From contig JALMLS010000378.1 of the NCBI GenBank assembly GCA_038496445.1, positions 1 through 64,000 on the forward strand: a DNA stretch of 64,000 nt. Direction: 5' to 3'. This stretch comes from Trichosphaerium sp. ATCC 40318. Lineage: Eukaryota; Protista; Tubulinea. This document shows, piece by piece, positions 1 to 46,423 of this stretch. The notes under the pieces were generated by a model, which searched no databases, was not told where the DNA came from, and saw only the letters and a list, made by a program, of their open reading frames with translations. A program made the translations under genes and the position numbers. Every line of letters begins with the position of its first letter. Position 1 is the first letter of the stretch.

Positions 1-371
1 CACTTGGCGATAGCATTCTCACGTGCCACACGAATACTTTGAAGCGTTCGCCAACAACGTATTTTTCTTACTGCGGCAACCGTACTGTGAAGTCCACTAT
101 GCAAACACACAAGTATTGTCTGTGCCACTTGTAACGCGCCTATCATTGGCCCTTGCGTTGAAGCCTTCAGTACGTCCAACATTTTGGGGTTTTTTTTGTT
201 TTTCAAACTCAAGACATTCCTGTCAACAACCGCTCATTCCGCTTAGACAAGAAATATCACAACAATTGCTTTGTTTGTACGTTTTGCAACAACAGCCTGG
301 CAGGTGGCTCTTACATTGAAAAGAATAATTCGCCATACTGCCGAACATGCCATAGAAGACTGTTTGGCTAA
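1..371 (+). CDS. Paxillin-like LIM-domain protein, 3' end (partial; frameshifted within the first ~105 nt)
   Basis: Spliced over intron 170-246, it reads ..PYCEVHY..IVCATCNAPIIGPCVEAFNKKYHNNCFVCTFCNNSLAGGSYIEKNNSPYCRTCHRRLFG*, i.e. the last two LIM domains with a paxillin-type C-terminus. Confidence 0.85.
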
Positions 372-3029: not shown

Positions 3030-6000
3030 ATGAGCAACAATAAGAATGCTCCTCCAACCGCAGAGCAGGAGAAAAAGCTCCTTGAAGAAGCGAAGGACGT
3101 TGTTCAGACACAGTCCTTTCAGATGAAGCGAGCTTTGGTACATACTCTAATTTCGTGCTTAAAAATATTACATACGTTTTGGTGTGTGTAAAGTAAAATT
3201 TTTGCGTGCTTTTGGGCTGATCCCAGGTGTCACTTCCCTTTTGGATCTAACACTCGAAAGGACAACAACAAACTAATGGACGCGCTCAGTCACGCTTCGA
3301 ACATGATTGGCGAACTGCATACCAGCCTATTGTCTCCAAAATGTTATTATGCCCTCTGTATCCTTATTTTTGTTGATAAAAACCACGTAGAACCATAGTC
3401 CTTGACAAATTATAAAGATATAGAAGCGATGGATCATCTACGCTACTTGGAGATGTATCTTGGCGAAGAGAAACATGGCAAGAGCATCAGCAAGCTTTAT
3501 GAATTGGTATGTGCGCATGGAGAACAGTAACGTTTATTTACTCGTTTAGGTGCAATACTCTGGCAGTATCATTCCTCGTCTGTACTTGCTAGTGACAGTG
3601 GGATCAGTTTACATTAAAAGTAAAAAAGTTCCAGCGAAGGTTCGACAAGCTCTAGAAAAAAAGCGGCTAAAAAGCACGTATCAACACTAAATCGCGTAGG
3701 ATGTATTGCACGATCTAGTAGAAATGTGTAGAGGTGTACAACACCCAACACGTGGTTTGTTTTTGAGAAATTACTTGAGCGAAATGACAAAGGATAAGAT
3801 GCCAGACACAGGCTCAGAATATGAAGGGTACAACAAACTAAATAGAGAAATTTGATTTTTTGAATGATAATTTTAATTTTATTTCTAATGACGCGTCTGT
3901 CGCTTACACAAATTTTAGAGCTGGTGGATCCACCAAAGATGCCATAAATTTCATTGTCGTCAATTTTATCGAGATGAATAAATTGTGGGTCAGAATGCAG
4001 CATCAGGTACCCCCTCCTTCACTCACCAGTTTTTACCGAATATTTTGTGTAATCCATTTGTACAGGGTCCAGCACGTGATCAAGGAAGACGCGAGCGCGA
4101 GCGTCAAGAATTAAAGATCCTTATCGGCAAAAATTTAGCACGTTTGTCACAACTTGAAGGCGTTGATGCCAGACAGTACAAGAGAGAGGTAAGTTATAAA
4201 TTTTTTTGCCAAACAGAAATAAATTCGCTATACCGTTGGTGTTAATGTCTTGTTCTTCTTCTTAGGTTTTACCAAAAATCTTGAACCAAATTGTGCAATG
4301 CAAGGATGTCATTGCTCAAGAGTACCTCATGGAAATTATTATACAAGTACGACGCGTTTTTAGTCGGTTAAATTTGTAACATTTTTGTCTTAGATCTTTT
4401 CTGATGAATTCCATCTTGCAACCCTCCCCCTCTTCCTCAAAACGTGTGGAAATGTAGACAGCAAAGTAGATATTAAGAAGATTATTGTGTCACTTATCGA
4501 CAGACTGGCCAAGTTTGCCAGCCGATCACCTCACGCCATCCCAACCTCCATCAAAATATTTGACATTTTCTACCAACAATTAGAAGCCATCATTTTGGTA
4601 CGTACAAAACCGCGAATCAACAACTTGAATTGTCTAAGTAACCATTTAAAATAGGAGAGGGAATCAATGAGCGATCAAGATAAATTGGCCATGCTCGTCT
4701 CTCTACAGAACTTGTCGCTTCACTGTTATCCTACTGAACTTGGTTATGTCGACACAGTATTGGCTCTGGCTACAAAGGTTGTAACCGCAGACAAAGGCGC
4801 AAAGGGGTACGTTCTGCGACATAGGGGTTTTGTTTTTGTTGTTGTTTGTTGTTACGTGTAAACCTTGTACTAACCTGTCGCCGCTACAGTGTTATCACTG
4901 AAAGAGCAGTATCTCTTGAAGTACAAAAATTGTTAAAAACCCCAATGAACACCTACAACAACGTATTGCAGCTCATCAAGCTCGAAAAATACACTGCCTT
5001 GTTGCAGACTTTAAAATACGCGGATAGAAAACGTACAGCCGCAGAGATTGGACAGAACGCCATAGACAACGCCACCAAAATCCCTAACGCGGATTCTGCT
5101 GTCAAGTTATTGGCCATTCTCAAACCTCTTGTGCAGGACGAAGACGATCAACCTGATGAAGAGATTGACCCAGTACGCCGTTGATTCTTAGCCACGCAAG
5201 CCTAAACAATAGCATTTGCTTTTTTTTTTATTGTCAAGTTGGGTAGCGCTCTCAATACATTTTTAACACACGCAATTGTAGGAAATGTTCCAAGATGAAC
5301 AAGCGCTCATCGCTAGATTGATCCATAGGTTTGACTCTGACACTATTGAGAGCCTCTTTGCAACGTACATTGAAGCAAAGAAGATTTTCGATTTGGGTGG
5401 TAAGTACCCTGCTTTGTTAGCCACAGTGCACCCCTTGAATACCTCAACAAATTTTTTACTTTGCCTACAGGAAACAGAAAACGATACACTTTCCTACCTT
5501 TGGCATTTGGTGTACTACGCCTAGCAACCAAGATCCAGACGAACCGCGAATCCGATGAAAACTGGGAACGCAAAGCCAAGAAAGTCTGTAAATTTGCAAT
5601 GGAGCTCGTCGGTAGCCTGCGCGAAGGTGATATACCTGTACGTACTTTTACAGTCGGAAAGGTCTTGGCCCCTCTGACACTACGCTACGCACAGTTTCTA
5701 AGGTTTTTTTTCAAGGTCATTACACTTCGTTTGTACTTGCAATGCGCATTGACAGCGAGCCAGTGCGGCTTTGAAGATTTCGCATACAACTTTGTAGCCC
5801 AAGCATTCGAAATCTACGAGGAGGAGATTGCTGATTCAAAATTGAAGTACGAGTGCATCGGCAGTATCGTCTCGGTTTTGAACCACGTCACTACCTTCGA
5901 TGATGACAACTACGACACGTTGGTGACACAGGCGACACAACACTCGTCCAGACTCCTCAAAAAGGTGGATCAGGTGCGCATCCCAACACATACCAACGCA

Positions 6001-6556
6001 CTCCTTCAATGACTACCTTGTTGCTAATGAACACTAGTCCCGAGCTGTTTGTAGATGTACACACTTGTTTTGGAACAAGAAGATCAAGGTTGGCGGAAGA
6101 GTCATGAAATGTTTACAGCGCTCACTCAAGATTGCAAACCAAACCAAGGCTGTAAGTATTTCCACTCTGCTTTTACTATTGCAACACATTTCTTTGGGTT
6201 GACAACGACAGCGCTAACCAGGAGTTATAGGTCGATACAGCGCACTTGTCGTTATACATTGAGATTTTGAATCATTGCTTGTATTACTTCCACGACCACG
6301 GCGCTGGGGAAGAAGCTGTACGACTCATTTTTTATTTTTAATACTATGTCTTAAATTTATGGGTGTGTAATAGATCGAACCGACATTCATAAACAATTTG
6401 ATCAATCACATCCAACAAACCTTTGATGACATGGGTCCAGAACTCAGCAAGAACTCAATCGCTTACACGCACTATGGAAGCACGTTAACTTTCATCAAGT
6501 TAAAGCAAGTCGACGTAGAGTCCTGGCAAGCAATCAAGCTTCCGGCCTCATCCTAA
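3030..6556 (+). CDS. VPS35: Retromer cargo-recognition subunit VPS35
   Basis: Exons give [31 protein letters not shown] (retromer motif), [33 protein letters not shown] and [14 protein letters not shown]; about 15 introns. Confidence 0.97.
3358..3417 (+). other. U12-type (minor spliceosome) GT-AG intron in VPS35
   Basis: Donor GTATCCTT and branch site TCCTTGAC about 10 nt upstream of the AG. Removing it restores YYAL|YIEAMDHL. Confidence 0.9.
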
Positions 6557-6736
6557 ATCCCCAATCACGTAAATAGCAAACAATTATAATACGAACACCT
6601 TTTTTTTCTCTTGTCTTAGCACTCCACGGTATTTTTTGAGTTCGAAGACTACGGTTTAGGTTTTGGTCACTTTTTTTTTTCAGTCCCGCAGAATCTGCCT
6701 GACTCGTTCGCTCGACATTATCCACACGCTAATAAC

Positions 6737-7068
6737 ATGAGCAGCACACCAATCGACTGGGCAAACTACAAGCCGGTGCTCAACAGAGAGTTTCCTAGAG
6801 TTAAGCGCGTTGCTTTGGCCGCTCGTCGCCTGAACTGGGCTGCATTCCCTGCAGTGTACCGTACACCTTTGTTGTGGCCTATTGCATTCGCTATTACCTT
6901 CACACACGTAACAAACTTCCCTAAGTACGGATCTGCGCGCATAAGGCTAAATACCGCTGCAATAAATCGTATTATAGCCTCTAATGTCGTTATAGGGCTT
7001 TTGCACAATACTTCCCATCCTCGAGGTACTTTGGCAACAAGTTTGCTCCATACTGGAACGAATATTAA
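6737..7068 (+). CDS. Small single-TM protein resembling cytochrome bc1 subunit 10 (QCR10/UQCR11)
   Basis: Two exons (intron ~6925-6995) give ~86 aa ending LLWPIAFAITFTHVTNFPKAFAQYFPSSRYFGNKFAPYWNEY*, a pattern similar to the UQCR11 TM and tail. Confidence 0.5.
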
Positions 7069-7331
7069 AGAGGAACAACGGGCATTACTCCCAAACACGC
7101 TATGTATTTACTGCGCTTGTATTTTTTTCTCGCCTCGTAATAAACACAACGATGCTTTAATACACAACGCGTACGAGTTAATATGAAAACTGATCCCTGT
7201 GAATGAAGTCACAGTGTAAAAAAAAAAAGTTATAGAGCAGGCAGTGGCTACAGTAGAGTACAATCTTTATTGAAAAAGACACCAAACAGACGCATACCAG
7301 CTAGCTACAAACAGTGGCTCCCTTGTGTAGG

Positions 7332-8934
7332 TCAAGAATGATTTTTATCATGATGAGATGATTTACGTTCAGAAACGGGATACGGGTGGTGTCGTTGTAC
7401 GCTCCTTTCGCGACTGGGCGGTGCTTTGCCGCTTGGCGCTGATGACGCTTTTTCCGTCGTCTCAGCCTTCTTCTCCACTTTCTCAGTGGGTGGTGGCGGC
7501 GGTTGACTTGGTTGTGGAGGCTTTGGCGGCTGTGGCTGGCTAGGTTGTGGTGGTCGGGGTGGCGGTGGTGGTCCTGAGGATCCAGGTGTTATGCTAGAAG
7601 GATCTAGCTTCTTGCCTTTATCTTGTACAGTCTGGTACAAATCCAATATCTTGTCGGATATTACTTTTAAATCTTCGATTTTTGCGTCAAATACCTCCCA
7701 CCAATCCTACACAAACAAATTCAGCAACGCAAAAAACGAAGGTGCAATGGATGACGTACGCCTCTCAGCTTCTTCTTCAAGAACTTGGAAGCCAAGAAAA
7801 TGGCGGCAGACGCCACAATGTGTGGCTTGAACTGTAGGCAAAGGGTCGTGCGCAGACTATGTGATGAATCAGTGTAAGGTCTTTTTGTCAAATTGGATTT
7901 TATGTGGTTTTTTTATTGTCGGTGCTTGAAAGGAAGAACCGGTTGAATAAACTGTGTCACGTGCGTACCTATCGTTTACGAAGTTCCAAGCGACTTGTGC
8001 CAAGTCTTTGTTTCCTATTGCGCATAAGGAGGCGAGGTAATAACGGCGTGTAGGCGGGGCGAACCATTAATCTTTTTACAATACGCCAACACAAACTTGT
8101 AAGGGTGCTCGATAGTGAGATCGAAGTACATGGTTTGCATCACAATGCGCTCATACACCAACATTCTATCGCGCAGATTTTTAAACTCCTAAACGGGACA
8201 CGGAGGATTTAGTACAAGGAACTCAAAAATAGCGTGGCAAAGTAATGTGATTGTGTTGGGCAAAACTCCAAAATCAGACGGAAAATTTGTGAAAAAAAAA
8301 AAAACCCAAACATTTTTCCCGCATTCGTACTTCACTCTCTACGTGCAGTGGCGCTTGTGTCTTATCACGCGAGTGGTGGCTGGCTACGAGCACATCTCGT
8401 AATTTCTTTGGCGTCTCTTCAACCTTGCCGGCAAGGAACAGACATGCCGTCGCAACAACCTATTGGTCACAAACTTTAGGGTACGATGATAAAATGATTT
8501 TGGTGCTTAAATGAATTCTCGAGTCTCCGAAAAAATTTGGTCAAATGGTGAGGGAGAGAAAAGGCAAAGCAGCAACTTAGCGCAGGTACTAACGTAGCGG
8601 TCGTAGGCCTCGAAGTCCTTGTAGACATAGAATCGGTGGAAATAAACGATGCCAGTCCCTATGGTTAACTGGGGCCTTTGGGAGCAAGAATTATTACAAT
8701 AACTAAAATTGAGCAACCGCAAGAGCGTACAATCGTAATTCTATGCCCAATTGTTGCATATAATCAATCGTGGGTCTGCGCCATTTTTCAAACCCCTTTG
8801 TAGCCTTGGGCGATCACGGTTACAGTTTATAACTTAAATATAGTCGCGGTAGTTGAATATTTATGTTTTTAACAATGTCTAACCTGTTGCGCGTTTATTT
8901 CCTCTGTGGTGAAATACCAGTTGTTAGTCTTCAT
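7332..8934 (-). CDS. Cyclin K/T family transcription cyclin with Pro-rich tail
   Basis: [65 protein letters not shown] and a poly-Pro C-terminus. Confidence 0.93.
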
Positions 8935-9091
8935 TTTTGGCGTGGTACAATCAATAAATAACAGTAACAAACAGAATTAGGAGCCAAATAGTGGCTTGCG
9001 GTCAAGAAGCATTCAACGCACCATTTTTTTTGTAGCTTTGTTAGACAGTTTTTTTACTACAAACCGATAGCGTAAACAGACTCTCGCAAAT

Positions 9092-10902
9092 ATGAGCACT
9101 ACAGCGACAAGTACAGTGTGTTTTCTTTTTCGTGTTTTTCACAATCCCTAGTTTATCAGTCTACGTCTACAGCACGCATAAATATGGCCGTTGTCAAGTA
9201 TTGGGGGAAGCGAAACGTAGAATTTAACCTACCCACAAACAGCTCCATTAGCGCAACTCTACAAGATCTAGTGACTGTTACAACCACAATGGCGAGCGAG
9301 AAGTTCACCAGTGACAAGTTCTGGCTGAACGGCGAGTGCGTGTCTTGCATTACCGCTCAGACGCGTTGAGAGTTAAAAATTTTGCGTAGGGAGCAGGATA
9401 TTGCATCTAACAAGCGCTACCAAAAATGTTTGCGAGAGATCCGAAAGCGTGTCGATCCACAGAAAGCCAAGCTACACATCCACACCGCTTCCAAGAACGG
9501 CTTCCCAACAGCCGCAGGACTAGCTTCGTCAGCGTCAGGATACGCAGCATTAGGTAGGTGCCTACAATGACTCACAAATATACCAATCACGCCATAGCGC
9601 TTGGTGTGTCGATCGTTAATATTTGCTAACGACCTATTGTAAGCGTACACCCTATGGACCATGTTTGAGCTTCCACAAGATCCGAAGTCACTAGCTGAGT
9701 TGACAACAATAGCCAGGTAGCTCCCTATATTGTTTAAAAAAACCAAAAACTGTTGAAAAATATTTTTTTAGTTTTTTCCATGGCGTGTGGCGTTGAACTC
9801 AAATCGAATAGGATGGGTTCAGGCAGTGCTTGTAGGAGCTTGTATGGAGGATTTGTAGAATGGCAGATGGGAACACGTGAAGACGGTACAGATTCCGTGG
9901 CCATTCAAGTACGTCCAACAATAAAACCAGTTGGTTTCAGCTTGGTTTGTTTATTCATTCGTCCACTCAATTACAACAAAAAGAATTTAAGCCAATTAAC
10001 TGTGCGGTAATAGGTTGCGAAAGAGGACCACTGGCCAGAGCTTCGCGTCATTGTTTGCGTTGTAAGTGATGAAAAGAAGGAGACAAGCAGCACTCAAGGC
10101 ATGCAGAGTACTGTCAAAACAAGCGAGTTGGCCACTGTACGTTACAAATCCCTATACAGGTGAGACTACTAGCAACACTTGACTCATTCGATATGCAGCA
10201 CCGCTATGCAAATATAGTACCTGAGCGCATGAAGCAGATGAGGAGTGCCATCCTCGAAAAGGACTTTGCCTCTTTTGGAAAGTTGATGATAAAGGACTCC
10301 AACCAGTTCCACGCTGTCTGTATGGACACCTACCCTCCTATTTTCTACATGAACGATACTTCAAAACTTATTATAAAGCTTATTACCGAATACAACAAGC
10401 GTGAGGGCGATGTAAAGGTGCGAGTCCATCATCATCATCATAAACTTGAAGAAAAAAAAAAGTCGACCTTGTTTTTTAACAACTTCTCACATTTGCCTGT
10501 CCAGGTTGCGTACACTTGCGATGCTGGTCCAAATGTGACAATATTCACACTAGATGACCAAGTAGATAAGCTATTATCAGCACTGCATCACCACTTGCCA
10601 CCATCTGACGTGAGCAAGTATGGCGGGTGCGTACTGCCAAACGGTGGATTGGGTAATAATTGTATTTGTTATTAACCCCTTTTGTCACCATAGACTCGAG
10701 AACCCAGTTGATGTTCAACCTTTGTTGTCGCACGTGCACAAGAACAAGGTCAAAGGTTACATACGAACAACCGTTGGGCAAGGACCTGCACAACAAGAGT
10801 CAGGTGCTCTCCTCAATCAACAAGGTACGAAAACCTCTTTTTTATACACTTTTTGTGTTATGTGGCTCATCTTCATTGTTAGGGTTGCCTGTAACATGTT
10901 GA
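9092..10902 (+). CDS. MVD: Diphosphomevalonate decarboxylase
   Basis: [71 protein letters not shown] and AYTCDAGPN. Confidence 0.97.
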
Positions 10903-11167
10903 AGAAACATTACACCAATGCTGCTTTTGGCAACATTGTTTTTTCATTTTTTCCGACAATATCTAGTACAATCAGGCTTATGCTTTCAAGTTTGTGCTAT
11001 TAATAAAGGCAACACTACTTTTCTTTTCTTGAGTTTATTGTTTTACTGGTACACGGGTTGTTAGAGATACACGCTTATATTATCATTATTATGGTACACT
11101 GGCGAGGCCATTTTCGGAGAGTGTTCTGAACTCGAAACACTTTTATTTTTAGGGCTTTACGCGAAAG

Positions 11168-11617
11168 TTATCTGAGGCGAAGTACGAGGTGGAGAGTTGC
11201 CTGTGTTTTCACACCGTATTCCTCCAAAGTGCGATCATCCTCAAGTTGTCTGCCCGCGAAGATAAGGCGTTGTTCATCAGGGGTAATGCCTATCACGTAT
11301 TAGCGCCCAAGTCCGCTTCGATTATCCGATAAAGTAGAAAATGGCGTTGGTGTTCCCGCCATAAGGATTTTAGAGACAGAATTGCCTCAAAAGGAGTTCG
11401 TAACACCAACCAGTTAGAATTGTGGTTGTCATTAAAGTCGTTCAACAAATACAGACATATTCTGTAAACCATTGCCAAGGTAGAGTTGTTTCATACTCCG
11501 AAAGGGGAGCGTACCTTCTTTGCTATGAATTTTTTGTTTTACAACTTCTACAGTGTGAGAAGGCGACACTTCAAGAGTAATTGTTCTACCGGTGAGTGTT
11601 TGTACAAAAATATGCAT
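11168..11617 (-). CDS. Divergent ubiquitin paralog, 74 aa, lacking the C-terminal Gly-Gly
   Basis: Two exons (intron 11290-11514): [74 protein letters not shown]. Confidence 0.9.
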
Positions 11618-13217: not shown

Positions 13218-14925
13218 ATGGAAGCAACACCACGCGTAGAAAAGACTATATCATCGCAGGTATGCCAACCACTACGTTTGTCAAACGCGTAGTATAACTA
13301 AGCGCGTGTAGGCGCATTTGAGAGCGTATTTAAAGTCAACAGAATGCAAAGAATTTCAAGCGTTTTTAATGTCGCTCAATTCAGGTACGCTTCCAATTAA
13401 CAATCAGTTTTGAACGTCACTTGCGTCATCTTACCATTGAAATAGCTGTTAAGGGTAAAAAGAACTCAACAGAGGTACACCATCTTTTCGGGCGTTCCTA
13501 GTTGTGACCCTGTGTCAAGGTTGTAATTTCAGAAACAAACGCCAAACTTATCGCTTTGCTGAACGTCTTGCTTGACTGGATTAAAAGTACGCCACCCATT
13601 GATCAACAGATGAGATACGGAAACAAGGTGAGTACTCGGTTACATAGCCAGGAAAAACGTGCGCGTGCACGTGCTGTATGTTCGCCTCACACAACACAAC
13701 GCCTGCTGTGTTTCCATCTTGTTGTCTGCGGGTGATTAACATGTTTAAGGCCTTCAGGAACTGGCACGAACTCTTAGAAACGGTACCAAACTAATGTCTG
13801 TGGTCCTATGGCCACAACAACAAGCCACGCGTACTAACTGAGCGTATAGAACGCATGTAGTCAGATGGCGTCCATCCTGCCTCCAGAGCACCAAAGCAAG
13901 GCAGCCGAACTCGCAGGTTCTATGAGTGTCTCGCCATCACGAGTATCTCACCTTTTTTGTTGATTGTAGAGTACTGGGTTGCTTCGTTTGGAAACAAGAC
14001 GCGCATAGATTATGGCACTGGTCACGAGACTACCTTTTTTTGTCTATTATTCTGCTTGTACAAGTACGTTAGCATCGAAACAAACCAATATATATGCACA
14101 TATTCTCTGAGTAGTCGATTGTAACAATGCTTTAGATTGTCTATACTTGAGCTCAAAGATTTTGGTTGCGCTATCTTGAAGGTGTTTACAAAGTACTTGG
14201 AAGTTTGCAGGTATGCCTTTTGTAAACAAAACCACCATTAACGTATGCTCAACTATGTATAGGATGTTACAGAGTACGTACATGTTGGAACCAGCTGGAT
14301 CACGTGGCGTGTGGTGCTTGGACGATTACCAATTTCTCGTATTTTATTTTGGCGCATCTCAGCTCTTAGGTACATTGCCTCCCACTCACTACCAGATTAA
14401 CACAATCCTTCGCTAATTACTTTAACAGGACACCCAAGTTTCTTGCCTTCAATCACGCGAGACTTGAAATTAATAGAAGAGCATCGCTCAGAATACATGT
14501 ACTTGGATGCCATACACTTTATCCACAAGGCATGTCACAACTTTATATAAAGCTAGGCGGGGATGACTAACTACTTTATTCCAGATGAAAACAGGACCCT
14601 TTGCTGAACACTCTCCGTACTTGGGTACGTCACTTGTATGATGTTGTCTCACTCTAGTTTAGAATCTATTGCTGATGTGCCAGTATGGACTAAGGTAAAT
14701 AAGGGAATGTTAAACATGTATCGCGATGACGTATTGCGTAAATTTCCAGTGATGCAACACTTTCTGTTTGGCACTATCCTCAAGTTCCCAGACACGTCTA
14801 CTCTCACACCAATGCCACGAACAGACGCCGGGTTTGGTGCTGGCAGTAGGAACATTAATGGTGTCAACCAAGGCAACGTGCGCCAACCAACGTGGGCCAC
14901 TAAACGACCAACACCCAATAAATAA
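13218..14925 (+). CDS. PTPA: PP2A activator PTPA (PPP2R4/RRD)
   Basis: [57 protein letters not shown] and [14 protein letters not shown]. Confidence 0.96.
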
Positions 14926-14988
14926 AAAGACACGGTTTTTTTTTTATTCTACAATTTAAATTACAAAAGTGGTGTACACCCAGCTTCT

Positions 14989-17900
14989 TTACACGACAAC
15001 AACTGCACTTGTTTTAGGTTTGTTTTGCGGTTGGAACTCTACAAGACCGCAATCATACTGTAGAGTGAAGGCCTTAATTTGTTGTTCAATTGGCTTCAAC
15101 CCATATTTTGAGGCAAGCGTTGCGCCGTGTTGCCATGCTGCACGTGCCGCGTGCTTATCTTGCTTTAACGCTGAATACCAACCTCGCCACATGTCGTATT
15201 GGGGCACTAAGATGGCGTGTTTAGAAGATGTCGCTGCTAGCAGAGCCAGGCCTTCTTCCACGTGCTGAACAACACGCGAAATAACTTGTGCATCCAGTAT
15301 TGAATTGTCTTTCTTTGCGGATGCCCTAAAAGTTTATAAGAGACGGCGCAAACAGAAACAAAAATAAAAGGAGTGCCATACAAAACGTTGAGTTGGGTTT
15401 GCATAAACAGTGGCCAAAAAGCGTGCAAATGGCGACTACCATCAGCTGACCAGCCTTGAACAGCAGCACGTGATGCAAACGATGCAAAATCAAGCGCTTC
15501 AAGCCAATGCCCGTGTCTGTATTCGAGGAGAGATGCAATGGCATCATGTGCAGCCTTGTGCTCCCATCGGTGGTCGTCCGTCATGGCATTGCGGCAATCT
15601 TTCAACGCCTTAAGGCAGAGCGTGCTGTCACCACTAAGGTAGTAACAGTATGCTCGTATAAGCGCAATAGTTGGTGTTGCGTCACACTGTCCAAGGGTTG
15701 TAAGGACTTGGTGATAGTGTCCTTGCCCTACCAACGCGGCTGCTTTGATGGCATGTACTGACAAGTAACATTCCTTGTCTTTCTGTACGTCCATACAGGT
15801 GGTAATGCCGTGGTGTGCACACTGAATGGCATCATTCAAGGCTCCTGTCAAATAATTATGACGTGCTACCCACCACATGAAGAACATGTTGTATTCGGTT
15901 GTTGCACAATTGGATCTTGGCGATGCACAACTAGATGCACGCATGGCCCGTGGCACTAACCAAGTATTGGTAACTTGTTCGAAACCAAGGCGAGAGATGA
16001 CGTAGTGGGCCAAAAAGGCGGTACCAATTGCTTGCCTAGCTACAATGTCAATACAATCTGTCAATAAAAACAAAAACGAAATATAGTCGCACACCTGTTG
16101 TCACCTAAATCATTCGCCAGGTTGTAAAAGTGTAGGCATATGTACATGGAGTGGTACAAGGACACTGTGCGACTGCTTTTTTTCAAAATAGTAGCATACA
16201 CGTCCAGTGTGTATTGGATGTTGAGTACTGTCTTAACGTTGACAGTGCCGCCCAACCACAGTGTAAAGTTGTATAACCACGTGCCAATAAACGACATATT
16301 CATCGCAAACCGAAATACTTGCCACAGCAATAACACTGCACACTGTATGGGTTGCGAAGGTAAACTATGATTTGTGAGTGTACAGTATAGATTTCATTGC
16401 TTACTCATGGTGCAACAGAGCCAAGGCTTTGCGGCTATGCTGAAATGAGATGAGTGGACTGTAGGCTTCTCTTGCTAGTCTGTGTTGCTTTTTCGCCTTT
16501 TTATTAAAGTACTTGGAAGGCGAGCGCAGCTCCAAAGTTGCATATAACCTGTAACAAATTGTGTTAACGAGGAAATTGGGTTGTTGCCAATAAAATAACA
16601 TACGTCATGCACAATATAACGCACAAAGCCAAGTAGCAGTACGTGTAAGGATTGATAATGGTTGGTAATAAATCATCTAGTATTAATGACGTTACGCCAT
16701 ACCATGCACTTGCTGCAATAGTAGAAGCACCGTAGGTATGTCCCACGGCTAAAATCGGTGTTAGAAATAGTAACCTATAATCAGGTGCTCACGCACATTG
16801 TAACACGCGGCCATGACCCTGTTTAATGACTGTGCTTCCATACATTGTTGCGTGGCTATATATCCGGTAGAATAGACCAAAGAGGAGCGTGAACGACATG
16901 ATGTAACTACTATAGTCTGGGTTTCCACTAGTACCATTGTGTCCAAGTGGAGATGCATCATAATGGTCTTCATAGTAGGGTGTTGGCATATTGTACATGC
17001 CTCGCTGCTGCTGTGCATGCCCCATACCGGCTGGATGCACGTTGTGGTCTAGTGAGTGTTGATCAATGCCATCATGCACTGGCAAGGTTACTGAATGAGG
17101 CGTAGATACACTAGGCACACAGCTGTTTTGGTGTTGATTGTTGTTGTGGTCATCTAAAGGGATAATGAGTTGTTACAGCACGACTTTTTTCATTATTTTG
17201 CCTTGTTGTTGTTGAGAATGTGAAACTCTTGATCTTGCGGCGCTGCTCATGCGCGGTGGTGGCCTCGCTACTGGCTGAATAAACGGGTCTGGAGGCCCGT
17301 TAGATAATGGCCATGCTGCGCGGTGCATTGAGGGTTGTTTGTAGTCTTAAAGGTAGGGTTGGTACATTGATCACTTGGTAAAAAGGCCTGTACCTCGCAT
17401 GTGAGTCTTTGGACCGTCCAGTTCGTCCAGTCTCGCAATATCAGATGCAAGTGATACGGTTGACACGCTAGAAATGGGAGACATGGGGCAGTGCATTGGT
17501 GAGGGAGGACAATTCGAGTGTGGCGTTGCTGCTGTTAGAATATTATTTCGGGGACCTTCGGGCTGTGGTCTTGGTACCTCGTGGTTCGTCAAGCTCCTCT
17601 TTTACGCAAGTTATGTGCGTAGAGAACATATCAGTAGGTTTTAAATGGTCGCTATCTTTTTCTGCTTGGCTGCCTTTCGCAACGCTCGTATGCTCGGGAT
17701 CTAAGTGTTGACGCTTTGGTTCCCTTTCTGAGGTTGTTTGAGTGCCAGCTCTTTCGTATCAAAGTTAAATAACGCTACAAGTTGAGTCGTGTACCTATGC
17801 CATTCGCCAGTACGTTTTCGTGAGCGTTTTGTTGCAGGTTTACCAGTTTTCAGATATTCGACGTGCTCCACCTGTTTTGGTTGTCGTGCATTAGCATTGC

Positions 17901-18222
17901 GTAAATATGTACAAACAGATTTTTTGCTTATTTTGCGTACAATGTCTTGAAGCCCTGGTATTTCTTTTACACGCTCTAATAACCACTCGTCGTCTGATTC
18001 TTTGACAACACTGCCAATCTTTAAAAAGCTTGTGGCTTCCTTCACTAAAGCATTGCGTGAAAACAGGTTTGGAGAACCGTATTTCTTTTTTAAAACATCT
18101 CTCAGCTCATCAAAGGCCGAGTTGAGTGTTTCTCTCCGTTTTCGCTCGTATAACTTTCGTTTTTCTTTTGGGTTGCGGTAATCTGTATCGCTGGCGTCTT
18201 TTTTGCGATTTCTTTGTCTCAT
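14989..18222 (-). CDS. SREBP-like membrane-tethered bHLH transcription factor (bHLH - low-complexity linker - TM1 - loop - TM2 - SREBP-type C-terminal domain)
   Basis: An in-frame spliced path of about 10 introns joins the bHLH (ERKRRETLNSAFDELRDVL..SRNALVKEA) to TM1 (YIMSFTLLFGLFY), loop GRVLQS, TM2 (YCYLALCVILCM), and then LPSQPIQCAVLLLWQVFRFAMNMSFIGTWL..LHFYNLANDLGD, which resembles the SREBP regulatory domain. Confidence 0.75.
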
Positions 18223-18372
18223 TGCGCCTTTCCTTTAGCGTAAAGGGCTGACAAAAAAAGGTAAAAACGTCAACTAATTTTAGTGCTGACCTTAACTGGA
18301 AGGAATGTCACGCTTATCATGCTGCTTTGTTAAAAATGTACAGAGTGTACAAAAGACACTTAGGTTTACATT

Positions 18373-20301
18373 TTATTTGGTCTTTGCACAATAAATAGTT
18401 GGAGCGTAAGGGTTATTTTGTTCAACTGTACCAGGAACAGTGGAAACGGTGTAGTACTTTGAGCAAACATGAGGGTAGCCCCAATCGCATACAGGATTAT
18501 CACTGTTAACTTCCGGGCTCCAAGCAATGCCAGGTGTTGGCGTTATGGTCTGCTCAATAGTAAACTGCCCTGTAGATTCGATTTTACCGATAAATACCTA
18601 AAATCAATTATATGTAAATAATAAGTCAAAATACAAGAGGTGCTTGAACATAACAACAAAAGAGTCATACACCATTTTGAATAGCACGTACAGGTTTGCT
18701 CAAATGGTGGTTGGAGTTCATTGACACAGGTTGTCCTGAAGGAGCTTGCACAGTCTGCCCTTTCATTGCTTGGCGCACTGATTTAATATCTGTTGTTCCA
18801 GATTGGGTAACTGCTTGAGCCCACATTCTGAAGCCGATGTAATGGGCCTGTGTCACTACTTGTTAGCGCGTTCTAAGACTGAATCGTATGTTAAGTACCT
18901 CCATCGGATCGTTGGTAGTCGTATCGGCAAGAGGAGTGCCAATGAAGGTCGAGTAGCTAGTCAAAAATATGAGTTGCTTTGAATCAAATTTTAGCCCAAA
19001 AAAAAAAAATGTCTTACGCTTGTCTCCATGCGTCGTTTACAGGACTGTCCTACAGGCCAACAGTTACAAATTAAATAGGACAGTAAGATGCGTACAATAG
19101 ATTGAAAGTAGTTCCAGGATGCGAAATGACCAGCAAGATTATCTCTGTCTGTTTGCGTCAGAGCTGCAAGCTCAGCTTCTCCAACGGAAAAAGCCATTAC
19201 AGGAAAATCTCCAGGGTTAATGTTCTAGAACGAAGATAGTGAGAAAGGGTACCGCAGATCGTATCATTCAGTACTCGTCGTGCAATTTCAGCGTAGAAAA
19301 AGTTGTTTGCATCGCCGTTAATCGTTGATACAACGCAAGTTTTTCCACCGTTGGCAAATGTGCTAATGTCTTCCATAATGCCAAACCAATCCGCATGTCC
19401 AAATGGCGTATAAATAGTCCTAATTTTGTCGGCTGTAATGCCCTGGGTTTGTAAATAGCTCTCAAGGATCTCATTTGTTGTTCTAAGGAAGGTGTTACTA
19501 GCGCGTAGTGGTAATGGTTGCAAACTACGAACGACATGTCACGTCACGTCACGTACCTAGGGTATACGTAATCTGTGCCAATCAATACGTACTGCAAACA
19601 GCTCTGGTTATCTCTGAGGAAGTCGACTCCAGGTATGGCCTTTTTTTTCAGTTTTTAGTTTTCTGTTTAACCCGCGTATACAAAACGTCGTACCTGCTGG
19701 TTGGGTGCAGCGCCAGTGTAAAACACATTTTTTTCACACTCTTCGGCTTCATACTGCACAGGATAAAACAGCATATGGTCTAATTCCTAATTGTGTAACC
19801 GTGAGTTTTGTGGATATCCACACGCACACGTCTACAACCGCACCTGAAAAACAGATAACACCGATTTTCGGGAAACACTCGTCCAGCATCCAAATACAAC
19901 GGATACCTTGTAATCAGTGATAAGTTCTCGAGCCCTGGTAGCAAATAGCGGCCAGTTAGACTCTCCATCAACAATTACTAGTTGTATTTGCTTCCCTTTT
20001 GCAGTGATATCAGTACTAGCAACTATTCCGCATGGTTTAATTATATCGCACCTAGAAGGCCTCCCTGATTGTTTAATTCATCCGCCATAAACCGTATGGT
20101 GTTCATTAGAGGCGTTTCCGATATGCACAGAGTGCCAGTGAGAGAGTGTAGCACACCAACTCGAATATACCTTTCTGGATCATATTCGAGGGCGGTTACG
20201 TTAGTGACGAACGGCAAGCCATCGCAAGCACCGCTTGCAACGCAATTTGGTACAAACGTGCTCAGAAAGCATAATACCAATACTATTAGGTTGTAGTGCA
20301 T
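18373..20301 (-). CDS. urtA: Urea ABC transporter substrate-binding protein (UrtA/FmdD-like) with signal peptide and ~9 spliceosomal introns
   Basis: [110 protein letters not shown] and NHHLSKP. Confidence 0.93.
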
Positions 20302-25808: not shown

Positions 25809-28800
25809 TCATGGTAGTGACCATTTGTCTTGTTTGCCAACCATGGTGAGCGTTGACGAACTCATAAATCCCAAGTCTGGGACAGCGTCCAGTAAACTTT
25901 TTACAAGTGGATCTAGTGCTTCATCTAACGTATTAGGCTTGTCTTTAGTAGTTTTTGTAGGTTGCGTAGGTGCGGTTGTAACCTCAGCCGTTGGCGGACT
26001 TTCAAAATTGGCCCAATCCATATTTCCATCAATACTTGTTTGTGACCCTGAATTTCCAAGCGTAAACTGCTCACTCTGAGATTTCTTCTTGCTTTGAATC
26101 TTTTGGGATATATTCTTGAGAAAGTCATCAGCGCTTATTGGTTTGGAGGTTTCAGCTTTTAATGTGGCTCCACCAGCTAAAAAAAAAAAAGGTGTTAATG
26201 GTGGTATTTGTTGTAGTACAGCCGCCACATACCCATATCCTTAAATACGTCATCTAAGAAGTCATCGCCAGCGATAGGAGTTGTAGTTTTAGTGGTACTA
26301 GTTTTAGGTGGAGTGCCAAAGAATGAAAAATCGAGTGGTTGTGAGCTGTCTGTTGGTTTCGGCTTGCTTGTGGCCGTTGAAGGAGATTTCTTTGTGCTCT
26401 TTTTCGACTTGGACTTCTTTCTTCTGGGACTGCTTGATTTCTTTGATTTAGATGAGGAGCTTCTCTTTACCTTTGACTTTGGTGAAGCTCTTTTCGCCGG
26501 TTTCGCTACAAAATAGCATTATTGCACTGTTGTGACTATAAGAAAAGAAAATCATACCAACAACTACTGGTGCTAAAACATCCATGTGAGGATTTAGAGT
26601 AGGTAATTTTGGTGAATTACTCTCCATCGGCATAGGTAACCGAGGTGACAAATTCCAGTACTCAACATTAGTCCACGGCTTCATTGCGCCAGCATCTGCG
26701 GCTTCAGCCTAAAAAGTAGTCAGCGTTGGCTGCAGAAATGTTGTAAAATAATAATACCTCTGGCAGGCCCAGTACTAACCGTAAATTCTTCTCAATGGCC
26801 GTTCCAACAAATACAGACTGAGCAGGTACGCTGGCACTAATATACAATATTTAATTTTAATGTTGTTGAAAGGGTAGTTGATCATTGTACCTTTCATCTT
26901 TTTCTTTGCAGCGTTGAAGCAACGAAGGTACAGTTTTTTCTTTGTCAGCCTTTGCAAAATGATCGAACCCAGCTGATTGTAGTACATCCTGTATCTTGTG
27001 ATATAATTCTTTCTGTGGCAAATCATTGACCCAATGTTTTGAAGACTGAATGAATTCAGTTAAACGATGGTAATAATACAAGTCGTACACTGGGCTGTGG
27101 TGATGCCACTACAGGCTCTGGTTTAGGTGCAGGTGCCGCTGCAGGCGGCTCTTCAAAAGCTGCAAAATCACCAAATCCTCCAGCTAGTGAATAAGTAAGA
27201 AATTCACAGAGGGATCACGTGATAACGTACTTGCTGGCGCTTCGAACTCGCCAAATGCGGCAAAATCTCCAAAGTTACCCTGTAGGAATAATGAGGATCA
27301 TGAATGGTTTACTGTTATCTTACCGAAGCATCAGGTGGTTCATCAAATGAAGCAAAAGATGCTTGTGGCGCAGCAGTAGCACTGGGAGCTGGTGAATCAA
27401 ATGCTCCGAATTCAGGCATCTCTTTTGTGGCGGTGGATTCAGTGAAGGCAGCGAATCCTTCATCACTAGGCGCATCAAATGATCCAAACCCATCAGAATT
27501 ATCTTGCTGATCAATTTGTGCCTTGGCAGAGGGTTTATCACTACCCGACTCTACCGTGCCAGCATCATGTTCTGCATCGGTGGTATCCGCTACGCCCTCT
27601 TGGTCACTTATTTCAGCGACGCCTTCGTCTGTGCCTTTCTCACTAGCATCAACATCGTCTTTAGCTAGAGGATCTTGATCATTCGTTGATTCTGCAGAGC
27701 CAAAGGCGCCAAAATCTGGAGTATCTTGGGTATCTACGTCTCCAAAGGCACCAAACTCTGGAGTGTCTTGTGTGTTAGGTTCTCCAAAGTCACCAAATGC
27801 TGTTGTATCTTGGGTATTTGCATCCCCAAAGTCACCGAATGCTGGCGTGTCCTCCTCATTCGCATCTCCAAAAGCACCAAACTCTGGAGTGTCTTGCGTA
27901 TTTGATTCTCCAAAGTCACCAAATGTGAGCCCATCAGTTGCATTTGTTTCACCACTATCCACAGCACCATCTACTACATTTGTGGATTGTGAATCTGGGG
28001 CATCTTCTTCATTTGTGCTATCCACTTGAGTTGACTGAACATCACTGACAACCTCATCGGGACTATCATCATTACTAGCAGTAGAAGCTAACACTTCTTT
28101 TTCTGGTTCGTTAAAATTACCAAAGTCTGTGGCATCTGTTGAATCTGCAGAACCGAACTTAGTCACGTCTTGTGATTTGTCAATTCCTACAACTGCGCTT
28201 CCTTCTTGTACGTTATCAGCAGCAGGCTCAGTTATACTAGAATCTTGTGTCAAGTTTGTGGACTCGTCAGCGATCACATCAGGTGAAGTGGTTGCGTCAT
28301 TCACATCTGCTTCAAATGGCTTTTGCAAACTGTCAGCCTCCGAATCATTGCTGGAGTTATCGCCGCCACTAGCTGGAGGATCTTGCAAGGTATCAAAGTC
28401 TTTAGCTGGAGGCTCTTGATCATTCGTTGATTCTGCAGAGCCAAAGGCGCCAAAGTCGGGAGTATCTTGGGTATCTACGTCTCCAAAAGCGCCAAAGTCT
28501 GAAGTGTCTTGAGTATTTGATTCTCCAAAGTCACCAAAATCTGGTGTGGCTTGTGGAATTTCAGAGTCACCAAAGTTACCAAAACCGTTTACGTCTGAAT
28601 TCGCGGAGGTAACATCAGTTGTACCTTGCGTTGGAATGGTGAGAGTATCATTCTCTGGCTCTGTAGTTGTACTGGGATCATTGTTATCATGCTGACTTAC
28701 GGTGTCATTGACGGGTTCATCATCAGCAACATCTTCATTAATATCATCTGGCGTATTATCAAAAGGTACTTCTGTTGAGGAGGTACTACCATACTGCGCT

Positions 28801-30488
28801 TCCACAGCACTCAGTTTTTGTTGAGGCTCGGTTGAGTTGTCGCTGTGTTCGCTACGATTAGTATCATCTTCTGGGCTTGTGATACTGGAATCCGGTACAT
28901 TTTCAGTAGAAAGAGCGACCTCAGGATTATTTACTTGGCCAAACGAGAAATCAGCGCCATTGCCCATAGAATCAAACGCTCCAAATTCGGTAGATTGGTC
29001 ACTTGGCTCTGCAAATGCTGAAAACTGGGTATCATTTTCAGCAGCACCAACAACATTATTAAATTCAATAGAAGGTTGTGCGGTTATAGAGTTGTCAGAA
29101 CTCGATGAACGCGGACTAGAAACTTGTTCAATACCATTTGCAACAGATTCATCGTTAGCGCTTTCTTGTTCTTCATCAGCATCTGTGGTAGCAGCATCGC
29201 CAATGGATTCAGTAATGTTCTCTTGTGCTGTTTGGTCATCACCTACTTGTGCTTCGTCTTGTTCGTTGCTTGCTGTTTCTACAGGTGGAGCAGTTTCGTC
29301 GTTATCAATAGTACTTGACTGCGTTTCCATTGCATCAAACGTTGTGTCCATAGTCGGTGGACTAGCCATGCCAGGTTCACTATCTACATCAAATGAGGTA
29401 AATGAATCACCAGTTAAGCCCACATTGGTTGTTTCGGTAGTCACAAGTTCCTCGCTTGTATCTGCGAGGCCTGTAGGTGGCTCTACTACTTCAGGGTTAT
29501 CATCTGAGCCTGTCAAGGCGCCAAATTCGTGCGCTTGTAGCGTGTCATCAAGTTGGCTATCGGATTGATCAGTGCTAAAGTTGGTAGTTGATTGTGCTCC
29601 AACATTTGGTGTTGCAGAATTGTCTTGTGGTTCCTGAATATTACCCTCCACCCCATTTTGCTCAGGCAATGTGCCAGAGGTCCCATTCATATGCAGTTGA
29701 GCGTCAGTAGCTGCTGTGCCATTAGTAGCCTCCGAGGGAGCGCTCTCAAAGGAACCAAATGCATTAAAATCTGTCGATGTGCCGGCTGATTCAAAATTTG
29801 CGAATTGCGTGTCATCTGGGAAGCCATTCGCAGCGCCTTGTATAGGAGCGGCGAAAGAACCAAACGCTGAAAAGTCGACTTCTTCGTTAGTGCCACTACC
29901 TGCAACACTTGTGAGCATGTGGACGCAATGCTGTAGTATGTACCCCAAGCAGCCCACTCAGTGGTGGCGCCTCCCGTTTCGGAGTTGTCTTCAACGCGCT
30001 CATCCAGTTGTTGCACTCTGCTTCCTTGTTGCGATGGTCTGGTAATAATAATTAGCTGAATATCGGTTTTACAAAATGCCCAAAAAGGTACCTTGAACCA
30101 ACAGATCCTACTTCAACGCCAATTGACGAAGCGCCAATTGATGACGCATCATTGTCGCCATCAAATGAATGGTCTATGGCCAAAAATCCGTTGCCATTGC
30201 TATTTGTGTCGTTGTGCGTTGCTTGTTTATCAATATCACCAGATTTAACTACAGCTTCTAATTTTTGTGTAGTGAGGTGCCCATTTGTGTCTACAAGCTG
30301 TAAGGCTAGCGTAACACGCACGAATAGTTTAATAGATTTTCCCATCAACAGAACGAATAAATAATGTAACAGCAGCATAACGCACCTTCCATAGAATCTT
30401 GTGTCAATGTACTGTGCGTTGTTGGTTCCTCCGTTCCATCCAGCGTCAGATTATTTTGGTTGGTACCAGCGCCTGGAGGATTCTCCAT
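25809..30488 (-). CDS. Aftiphilin/CLBA1-like clathrin-AP-1 accessory protein
   Basis: Long acidic disordered region with many (D/E)FG(D/A/E)F gamma-ear-binding motifs, a DWANF (WxxF) motif, and C-terminal LLDAVPDLGFMSSSTL resembling the aftiphilin LPDLSFM box. Confidence 0.75.
27675..27925 (-). repeat. Coding tandem repeat, 42-bp (14-aa) unit, ~6 copies
   Basis: FGDFGESNTQDTPE / FGAFGDANEEDTPA / FGDFGDANTQDTTA / FGDFGEPNTQDTPE / FGAFGDVDTQDTPD / FGAFGSAES. Confidence 0.9.
28416..28587 (-). repeat. Second copy of the 42-bp coding repeat array (~4 units)
   Basis: FGDFGESNTQDTSDFGAFGDVDTQDTPDFGAFGSAESTNDQ; the DNA is nearly identical to the end of the 27675-27925 array. Confidence 0.9.
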
Positions 30489-44008: not shown

Positions 44009-44632
44009 TTATTCTTGTGTAATCAGGTCTCCATTTTCAAAGTGGCGGTGTATATTCAGCGTGCCATTACTACTCCAGAACTTGAATTCTCCGTCCAGCT
44101 TGTCATTCACAAAGTAACATTGCTTTTGCAATACTCCAGTTTCGTACCACTCCTTGTATTCTCCATAAGCCCTGCCTTTATCAAAACACGACTCTTTTTG
44201 TAATTGACCATTCCAGTGCCAACGCTTGTATTGTCCGTGCCGCTCTCCTTTCACATAGACAAACTGCTCCCACAGTTGATGGGAGTCAGCTTTGTTGTAC
44301 CAGCGCCTATAAAGACCGTCTCTTTTTCCATTGTCATAGCAACACTGCACAGCCACCGTGCCATCCTCATACCATTCTTTGGACTCGCCGTGTAGCACTC
44401 CATTTTGCCATCTTTCTTGCTTTGTTTTGTGGTAGGTAGGCGCTGCTTTATGATTTGTGGTTGTTGCGCTAAATTGTAGCCATTTGCCATGTTTTTGTAA
44501 TTTACCATCAAACCTTGTGGTTGTAGCTGTATGTTTGGACAATAAACTCCATTTTATAAATACTTCTGGCTCTAATTCTAAAATACCAAACTGTAACTCA
44601 ATTGGAAGAATGAGTAGATAGCATAACGACAT
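44009..44632 (-). CDS. Intronless F-box-like + MORN-variant (YwqK-type) repeat protein
   Basis: N-terminal LPIELQFGIL, followed by repeats G..K.WYE.G......Y..GK.DG. Confidence 0.85.
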   Translation of the reverse strand: MSLCYLLILPIELQFGILELEPEVFIKWSLLSKHTATTTRFDGKLQKHGKWLQFSATTTNHKAAPTYHKTKQERWQNGVLHGESKEWYEDGTVAVQCCYDNGKRDGLYRRWYNKADSHQLWEQFVYVKGERHGQYKRWHWNGQLQKESCFDKGRAYGEYKEWYETGVLQKQCYFVNDKLDGEFKFWSSNGTLNIHRHFENGDLITQE

Positions 44633-44788: not shown

Positions 44789-46333
44789 TTAGAATGGGCT
44801 ACATGCCCTTGCGTCCTCTCCTTGAGGCCAATCTTCAAAGTGGGTAACAACCCAAGTATTGTGTAATTTAGTCATAGCTTGTTTAGTAATATTGCAGTCA
44901 GTAACATCTATCCATCTCAAGTTGTTCATTGAAAAAATGCCAACATCTGTAATTTGATTACATTTTTTAAGGCTTACTTCTCTGGCACTTCTAAGGTATC
45001 CCAGCCCTTTATCTGTAATATGTTCACATTCATCAAGTATTAAACTCCGTACTTTCGCAAGATAACGCAAACCATCATCTGTGACTTGTACACATGCCAT
45101 TCTAAGTGAATCAACATTTCCAAGAGTTTTTATGCCTTCATCACTTATTTCTGTGTGAGATATAGATAGACTGTGAACGTTCTTTAGGTGTTTAATACCA
45201 CTATCTGTGATAAAATAGCATGCATTAATACTTACACTATGAGCATCCTTTAAAATCTTGAGTGAGTTGTCAGTTATGTCAGTACAATCAAGACTGATTT
45301 CATTCACTCTTTTAAGTTCTTTTACACCAACATCTGTCACACTTGTACCTGATAAATGTATTGTTTGAACACCACCTGCTAGTGCGATTACGCCAACATC
45401 AGTTACTTGAGTATCATTCAAGTTGAGTGTATTTGCTCCTGCCAATAGAGATATACCTTCATCTGTTATTTTATCACATTGTGAGAGATTAATACTGTGC
45501 ACTCCGGCTAGAGCTGAAAGACCATAATCTGTCACATTTGTTCCTGAAATATTAATAGAATGTATGCCTGCAAGGCGTCTAAATCCAACATCAGATAAAT
45601 TCTTAATATCTATTAATCCAATGTGAGTCAATGCTTTTGGAAGATAAGACAAAAAGTTATCACTAACAGATTGACAATATTCAAGTGACAACTTGCTTAG
45701 ATTTGTAAACAATCTGAAATCATCCAAGCTTAGTGGTAAATGAAAGGCTGTAAGGCAAGATAAATTAGTCAAATATGAAATAAGATGACTACCATATGAG
45801 GTTGTGAGTCCTAGATTAAGAGACTTGACATGAGAAACTGTCTCCAGAGTGTCAACATAGTACATATTAGAAATATCGATTGTATGTAATCCTTCAATCT
45901 TTGGAATGTTGTATAGATGTTTACAACTAGAAATACTTAGGGTATGTACTCCTTTGAGTGCTCTGAGCCCATTAGTCGTGATATGTGAACAATGAGAAAG
46001 GTCAATTGATTTCCTCCCTTGAAGGTATTTCAATCCTTTATCTGTTAGTGAGCCTTTACATCCTCCAGGAGAAACAGTTACTTTTGCATTGCGTAGTATA
46101 AGGTAAGACTGAAGCCTACGAGCGTCTTCATCCCCTTTAATACAAACACTGCGGTAGCCGATGTGTTCAGCTATTATCGATGCAAATAACTTACAAGTAC
46201 GAGCGGCGCTATTCCTGTCGATGTCTGGAAGCGCTTTAAGAACAAAGACTTTGATTTCGACTGGTAAATTGTCTAAACACGTTGCTGTACTCTCCAATAC
46301 ACTACAAGGATTCAGTTGTTTTTTTGTTGCCAT
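44789..46333 (-). CDS. Intronless F-box + leucine-rich repeat protein
   Basis: LDNLPVEIKVFVL..AARTCK F-box, then >15 LRRs of the form ITDxGLxxLxGVHxIxLS. Confidence 0.9.
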   Translation of the reverse strand: MATKKQLNPCSVLESTATCLDNLPVEIKVFVLKALPDIDRNSAARTCKLFASIIAEHIGYRSVCIKGDEDARRLQSYLILRNAKVTVSPGGCKGSLTDKGLKYLQGRKSIDLSHCSHITTNGLRALKGVHTLSISSCKHLYNIPKIEGLHTIDISNMYYVDTLETVSHVKSLNLGLTTSYGSHLISYLTNLSCLTAFHLPLSLDDFRLFTNLSKLSLEYCQSVSDNFLSYLPKALTHIGLIDIKNLSDVGFRRLAGIHSINISGTNVTDYGLSALAGVHSINLSQCDKITDEGISLLAGANTLNLNDTQVTDVGVIALAGGVQTIHLSGTSVTDVGVKELKRVNEISLDCTDITDNSLKILKDAHSVSINACYFITDSGIKHLKNVHSLSISHTEISDEGIKTLGNVDSLRMACVQVTDDGLRYLAKVRSLILDECEHITDKGLGYLRSAREVSLKKCNQITDVGIFSMNNLRWIDVTDCNITKQAMTKLHNTWVVTHFEDWPQGEDARACSPF

Positions 46334-46423
46334 GATAATGCGGAACGTTAGCCATGTAAAGAAGTACAAGGACTTTTTTGCAGATTATTTCCGTCTATTC
46401 AGCAAACCAGCTGTTTTACTTCT

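Follow-up and report, generated by a model that had tools for sequence, protein, structure and literature searches.

A candidate gene for a membrane-tethered, SREBP-related bHLH transcription factor precursor in Trichosphaerium sp. ATCC 40318

Can the membrane anchor of an SREBP (sterol regulatory element-binding protein) occur together with a basic helix-loop-helix (bHLH) domain that has an arginine where this family carries its hallmark tyrosine? The question is raised by the minus strand between positions 18222 and 14989 of contig JALMLS010000378.1 from Trichosphaerium sp. ATCC 40318, of which we analyzed positions 1 to 64,000 (hereafter the window), a 64-kb stretch of about 42% GC that is compact, intron-rich and eukaryotic in character. 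A sequence-only reading of this locus had proposed that its fragmented open reading frames (ORFs) join by splicing into a bHLH domain, a linker, a first transmembrane segment (TM1), a short loop, a second transmembrane segment (TM2) and a helical domain. Our analysis suggests that the locus is probably one gene for a membrane-tethered bHLH transcription factor precursor that descends from the SREBP family or shares an origin with it.

Read without splicing, the locus consists of many short ORFs whose frame shifts along its length, as seen in the six-frame reading and the ORF list. A spliced model, built by hand and checked by script, yields one frame of 933 aa from ten exons separated by nine introns of 40-56 nt, and the proposed order of parts is thereby borne out.

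14989-18222, minus strand: proposed gene, coding region, with the ATG at 18222 and the stop codon at 14991-14989 (spliced model, minimum-intron control, codon usage)
Exons 1 to 5, minus strand: 18222-17795, 17750-17578, 17531-17394, 17345-17202, 17153-16797
Exons 6 to 10, minus strand: 16748-16604, 16548-16405, 16364-16105, 16057-15382, 15325-14989
17154-17201, minus strand: GC-AG intron of 48 nt, with an equally frame-preserving GT-AG alternative at 17176-17123 (54 nt)
14943-14948, minus strand: likely polyadenylation signal AATAAA, located 41 nt beyond the stop codon

When introns of 38-60 nt were allowed in a dynamic-programming control, read-through from ATG to stop took at least nine introns on the real strand; in any frame of the antisense strand, the number was 23-24. 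GT-AG ends are found on eight of the nine model introns, CTAAC-like branch sites lie inside several of them, and GC content is 46% in the exons and 37% in the introns. A codon-usage frame score, trained on the other long ORFs of the window, ranks the model frame best or near-best in every exon; the exceptions to a clear first place are exon 8, which is a near tie, and exon 3, where one antisense frame scores slightly higher.

Three splice choices bear on individual features of the protein. The GC-AG intron at 17201-17154, which had been part of the sequence-only reading, proved dispensable, as GT-AG splicing at 17176-17123 also keeps the frame and alters only about 17 residues of the linker. 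The intron-5 donor GTGCGT at 16796 (48-nt intron) is needed for an RVLQ motif in the loop, which a 69-nt alternative, derived by hand, would remove. At intron 8, the better acceptor is 16058 (intron 16104-16058) and gives NLANDL-DCID, and a weaker alternative (16094-16036) gives 'GD' after NLANDL. The splice between exons 7 and 8 is independently supported, because the gapless SREBP alignment described below runs across this junction.

The evidence that links the gene to SREBPs is a short block that follows TM2. All SREBP statistics given here rest on sequences returned by databases. A 59-aa stretch of human SREBP-1 served only as bait to retrieve real sequences and never entered a statistic; over its full length, this bait shared 80% identity with one retrieved match. 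From one of the retrieved fragments, a further search returned 55 SREBF1/2 exon fragments, one of which is named SREBF1 by its source. Contig L001 (12.7 kb) carries a bird-like SREBF1 gene with EKRYR in the basic region, DRSR...NP, TM2 and the C-terminal exons. The SREBP motifs that had been quoted in the sequence-only reading are real, as they recur in the database SREBF1/2 fragments and in L001. On this contig, an ENA metagenome scaffold (sample ERZ28614944), SREBF1 occupies positions 5700-11400 of the plus strand, is compact and GC-rich, and presumably represents host DNA.

16274-16442, minus strand: SREBP-like block, residues 498-540, spanning intron 7 (16404-16365), with a gapless alignment to the exon that directly follows TM2 in vertebrate SREBP1/2

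The block is identical to the SREBP exon at 16 of 43 positions (37%; 33.5 bits, BLASTP), with the LP, LLW, R and G-x-WL positions among the matches, and it is the top tblastn match of the full 933-aa model across the six frames of L001. Its Smith-Waterman score of 75 compares with a shuffle mean of 32 and was reached by none of 5,000 shuffles under either of two shuffle schemes (Gumbel P ~1e-5). A profile of 58 SREBF1/2 fragments gives the model 17.6 bits, the best score among the 1,268 ORFs of the window, the next unrelated ORF scoring 9.0. Against the C-terminal domain alone the same profile gives 19.3 bits, a value that none of 40,000 local composition-preserving shuffles attained (best 14.5). 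The position of the block, about 30 residues past TM2, is also SREBP-like: counted from where the TM2 window begins, its offset is 57 residues, compared with 61 in SREBP1. The motifs LPSQPIQ..LLLWQVFR..IGTWL and NLANDL, which the sequence-only reading had pointed out after TM2, are present in the model, but the 'GD' that it placed behind them requires the weaker intron-8 acceptor. Judged from these sequence comparisons, homology of the proximal C-terminal domain to SREBP is well supported. In the ESM Atlas, exon 8 meets with low recognition and falls in no named cluster.

The block follows a region with the layout of a membrane hairpin.

16861-16911, minus strand: putative TM1, residues 376-392, Kyte-Doolittle 1.18 over 17 residues
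16651-16860, minus strand: predicted lumenal loop, residues 393-446 (54 aa), spanning intron 5
16530-16650, minus strand: TM2, residues 447-468, strongly hydrophobic, spanning intron 6

TM2 has Kyte-Doolittle values of 1.8-1.95 and is followed by six Lys/Arg within the next 15 residues, with none in the 15 residues before it, where two acidic residues stand. By the positive-inside rule, this charge distribution predicts a cytosolic C-terminal domain. With the bHLH domain cytosolic as well, the weaker upstream segment would also have to span the membrane, which gives an SREBP-like hairpin. A third, semi-hydrophobic stretch lies within the loop at residues 420-438. The loop also holds RVLQ at residues 410-413 (16809-16798), about 18-20 residues past TM1. 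This motif had been read as a possible site-1-protease site; it is present in the model, but it is lost with the alternative intron-5 donor and has no statistical weight, since chance alone would be expected to produce a motif of four residues in a loop of 54 aa.

The N-terminal part of the protein is a bHLH domain followed by a long linker.

17998-18174, minus strand: bHLH domain, residues 17-75, basic region KLYERKRRE
16927-17997, minus strand: linker of low complexity enriched in P, S/T and Q/N/H, residues 76-370, spanning introns 1-4

Pfam PF00010 (HLH) matches with an E value of 4.6e-6 (26.8 bits, cut-off 20.7) over residues 20-45, that is, the basic region and helix 1, and helix 2 is recognizable by eye (SRNALVKEATSFLK). 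As a control, the real SREBF1 bHLH exon gives a comparable partial Pfam match (E 6.5e-8). The nearest ESM Atlas clusters of the bHLH exon are all HLH, generic and INO4-like, at 0.8. The basic region ERKRR has Arg5 (not His or Lys), Glu9, Arg12 and Arg13. The replacement of the SREBP tyrosine and of His5 by arginine and the location of the bHLH domain at the extreme N-terminus, all noted earlier from the sequence, can be read directly in the model. The low-complexity linker was likewise foreseen, but it is about 300 aa long and not about 250 aa.

The larger part of the C-terminal domain lies beyond the SREBP-like block and is of a less specific kind.

14992-16273, minus strand: remainder of the C-terminal domain, residues 541-933 (about 390 aa), predicted all-helical and tetratricopeptide repeat (TPR)-like

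Searched with Pfam, all C-terminal exons were without a significant family; the C-terminal domain of real SREBP1 likewise has no Pfam family. ANAPC3 was the sub-threshold Pfam match (E 0.041; 14.6 bits, cut-off 27.2). The ESM Atlas places the distal domain with TPR clusters at 0.94, with only 134-156 of 256 features shared. An AlphaFold2 model of exon 9, made without an alignment, is all-helix with a mean confidence (pLDDT) of 49, and Foldseek searches with this model in AFDB-SwissProt and PDB gave weak TPR matches (E 0.02-0.2, TM-score <0.5). The C-terminal exons had no match in PDB, tblastn detected no similarity between the distal domain and the SREBF1 of L001, and no locus for exon 9 was found among metagenome contigs. 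By the ESM Atlas and Foldseek comparisons, the distal 390 or so residues look like a generic TPR-like repeat.

The continuity of the gene depends on the splice behind the bHLH exon.

17751-17794, minus strand: intron 1, 44 nt, GTACAC...GAAAG, connecting the bHLH exon with the exons downstream

That the bHLH exon and the downstream exons form one transcript is inferred from the sequence, and this is where an alternative with two adjacent genes on the same strand would apply: a soluble bHLH protein of 173 aa (18222-17701), and a separate membrane protein with the SREBP-like C-terminal domain that begins at Met183 (17631) or later. Without splicing of intron 1, exon 1 is indeed a complete 173-aa bHLH ORF with its own stop codon at 17703-17701, and the genome is compact enough for close neighbours, with only 63 nt between the stop codon of this gene and that of PTPA (PP2A phosphatase activator), a gene that converges on it. 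Two genes would, however, be separated by a spacer of just 70 nt, and a minus-strand scan found no AATAAA in the interval from 17701 to the next ATG at 17631; on this strand, AATAAA is found where the upstream gene ends (18377), inside the coding sequence (16505) and 41 nt beyond the last stop codon (14948). The 40 codons from the intron-1 acceptor at 17750 to the first downstream methionine at 17631 are open and without a methionine, and they score as strongly coding in the model frame (+12.8, compared with -15.6 and -15.5 in the other two frames). This part of exon 2 is coding but lacks a methionine of its own and must therefore join an upstream exon. In addition, a single SREBP-like gene predicts just such an arrangement, in which a bHLH exon is followed directly by an anchor and C-terminal domain of the SREBP type. 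We therefore consider a division into two genes improbable. Still more improbable in our view is a single-pass type II factor in the manner of ATF6/CREB3, in which only residues 447-468 span the membrane and the cysteine-containing C-terminal domain acts as a lumenal sensor. Such a topology would fit the weakness of TM1, the Asn-Pro directly before the strong segment, the cysteine content of the C-terminal domain (2.8%) and the two N-x-S/T sequons near its start. The charge distribution around TM2 described above, however, predicts a cytosolic C-terminal side, which would leave the bHLH domain in the lumen unless another segment spans the membrane, and the corresponding block is cytosolic in SREBPs.

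A single gene with a hairpin anchor could still have arisen without SREBP ancestry, and a number of observations speak against such ancestry. The hallmark tyrosine position (position 12) is occupied by Arg29, where the real SREBF1 exon of L001 reads EKRYR. A leucine zipper is not evident after helix 2, where inspection revealed no regular leucine heptad and where Gly69 and Pro88 break the helix that would continue from helix 2. The bHLH exon had zero matches in PDB and in a database of 5.8 billion clusters and is too divergent to be placed by sequence search. TM1 is only weakly hydrophobic and lacks DRSR and a mid-helix Asn-Pro, which are present as DRSR...FNP in the SREBF1 of L001; Asn-Pro occurs here only just ahead of TM1 (371-372) and just ahead of TM2 (445-446). 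The sequence-only reading had proposed an SREBP-like C-terminal domain; this holds for the stretch past TM2, which is significantly similar and in the same place, but only for about 45 of its roughly 465 aa, as similarity is limited to the 43 residues of the block. Taken alone, neither the flanking NLA...GD motif (P ~0.1, and only with the weaker splice variant) nor the basic stretch after TM2 (P ~0.5) is significant in comparison with SREBP. An exhaustive phmmer search of 1.84 billion proteins with the 224-aa exon 9 gave two matches, both repeat-driven and spurious, and no SREBP, and neither SREBP nor Sre1 was among the Foldseek matches, for which the query was the poor model with pLDDT 49.

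These points leave room for a second explanation, in which a conventional E-box-type bHLH domain acquired a hairpin anchor and a generic TPR-like domain through a fusion independent of SREBP, and the similarity over 43 aa reflects convergence of hydrophobic helices of the TPR type that are rich in tryptophan and leucine. The TPR-like character of the distal domain in ESM features, Foldseek matches and ANAPC3 score would be expected in that case, as would the absence of the hallmark tyrosine and of the TM1 motifs, and the exon-8 part of the block alone reaches just 8.5 bits in BLASTP with compositional adjustment. Partial convergence is also conceivable because the real SREBP block has a TPR-like flavour itself, with a weak match to the TPR-type protein Tom20. 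However, composition-preserving shuffles never attain the score of the block. The SREBP profile matches this single place and none of the other TPR-like repeats, the conserved residues (LP, LLW, R, G-WL) differ from the TPR consensus, and the distance between TM2 and the block is that of SREBP. To our knowledge, moreover, a bHLH domain combined with a transmembrane hairpin is known from SREBPs only. On balance, an origin independent of SREBP appears unlikely, though it deserves more weight than a division into two genes or a type II topology, and we favour a precursor related to SREBP.

Compared with vertebrate SREBP-1 and SREBP-2, the predicted protein has the same order of bHLH domain, linker, TM1 (here putative), lumenal loop, TM2, basic stretch and large helical C-terminal domain, the gapless 43-aa block of 37% identity at the same offset past TM2, and, with the intron-5 donor of the model, an Arg-x-hydrophobic-x motif (RVLQ) in the predicted loop. 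It departs from them in having arginine in place of both the hallmark tyrosine and His5, no evident zipper, a TM1 that lacks DRSR and the mid-helix Asn-Pro, and about 390 distal residues without detectable similarity. Moreover, its bHLH domain lies at residues 17-75, about 300 aa from TM1, whereas that of vertebrate SREBPs lies about 90 aa from TM1 and behind an N-terminal activation domain, and its intron positions differ from those of the vertebrate SREBF1 in L001. Fission-yeast Sre1 and other fungal SREBPs are likewise membrane-bound bHLH precursors with a helical C-terminal domain, which in Sre1 is an eight-helix bundle that binds the WD40 domain of Scp1 (PMC5099872). The fungal proteins, however, retain the tyrosine, and no exon of the present gene matches the Sre1 C-terminal domain in PDB. 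The latter comparison has little power, because the real vertebrate block also fails to match this domain. Fungal SREBPs show little conservation outside the DNA-binding domain, and the tyrosine of the basic region, which is kept in all of them, is regarded as the hallmark and inclusion criterion of the family (PMC6329520).

With Glu9, Arg12 and Arg13 (ERKRR), the basic region resembles that of group-B E-box factors of the Max, USF and Pho4 type. These factors are soluble and have His or Lys at position 5, in contrast to the hairpin, the C-terminal domain of about 465 aa and the Arg5 found here. A dormant, membrane-anchored factor freed by proteolysis, as predicted here from the sequence, is also a feature of the ATF6/CREB3 bZIPs, Spt23/Mga2 and MYRF, but their DNA-binding domains are of other kinds, their anchors are single-pass or tail anchors, and an SREBP-like block is absent from all of them. 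Because both the hallmark tyrosine and the TM1 determinants are missing, the protein is not a canonical SREBP. Most likely, it is an SREBP-related protein of SREBP architecture with a conventional bHLH domain, and thus a variant of a known system rather than a new kind.

Release from the membrane is a mechanism that, for SREBPs, we know to be characterized in animals and fungi only. By analogy, the precursor would be inserted in the endoplasmic reticulum as a hairpin with the 54-aa loop in the lumen, and the cytosolic helical C-terminal domain of about 465 aa would serve as the regulatory or escort-binding part that retains it. Signal-dependent cleavage at or in the membrane could then free the N-terminal 370 or so residues for transfer to the nucleus; candidate protease routes are S1P/S2P or, as in some fungi, the Dsc ligase together with a rhomboid. 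The freed factor would dimerize through its HLH and activate E-box genes.

The residue at the Tyr/Arg position plays a role in E-box versus sterol response element binding, and arginine at the SREBP tyrosine position forms a salt bridge with the conserved glutamate that underlies E-box contacts (PMC6329520). As Arg29 can pair with Glu9 in this way, binding to palindromic E-boxes is predicted here, and not to the non-palindromic sterol response element; from Glu9 and Arg13, the freed factor is predicted to be specific for E-boxes of the CACGTG type only.

A more specific version of the favoured reading, which we put forward tentatively as a possibility short of an even chance, is that the gene belongs to the SREBP lineage in a unicellular eukaryote and has kept the hairpin and the proximal block together with an arginine-type, zipper-less bHLH domain at its N-terminus. 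It could then represent either an ancestral state that preceded the tyrosine or a re-wired paralogue that couples SREBP-style release to plain E-boxes beside a canonical SREBP elsewhere in the genome. The literature defines SREBPs as a family by one tyrosine that gives them dual or alternative DNA specificity. An SREBP anchor and part of the regulatory domain joined to an ordinary arginine would separate the two halves of this definition, the novelty in DNA binding and the membrane regulation. If true, the gene would provide a natural experiment on the contribution of the tyrosine, bear on the question of which half arose earlier, and open a way to study membrane-regulated transcription in a eukaryote that has received little attention. 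It also illustrates that screens for SREBPs based on the tyrosine can miss relatives.

The gene is closely flanked on both sides. Upstream, a gene on the same strand ends just 144 nt ahead of the bHLH ATG, and the stop codon of that gene is preceded, within 18366-18377 on the minus strand, by an AATAAA 6-11 nt upstream of it. A tract resembling a 3' splice site (T-run and CAG) at about 18245 could mark an intron in the 5' untranslated region. Downstream, the PTPA gene at 13500-14925 on the plus strand, identified by Pfam PTPA matches on two exons (E 8.7e-18 and 4.8e-16), converges on the bHLH gene; as its stop codon at 14925 is just 63 nt from that of the bHLH gene at 14989, the 3' ends of the two genes must meet or overlap. 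PTPA has at least one intron of apparently about 130 nt, as estimated by eye, which is longer than any intron of the bHLH gene.

Elsewhere in the window, the minus strand at 27315-29957 holds an uninterrupted ORF of 880 aa with no Pfam domain at E <=0.001, which is unusual, since most genes of the window are split by short introns. Two adjacent ORFs on the minus strand, at 44789-46369 and 44009-44632, are also intronless; for the smaller, the one that was looked up, public assemblies hold no record of the exact product, and the larger of this pair encodes an F-box and leucine-rich-repeat protein (F-box-like, E 2.3e-6; LRR_6, E 5.5e-17).

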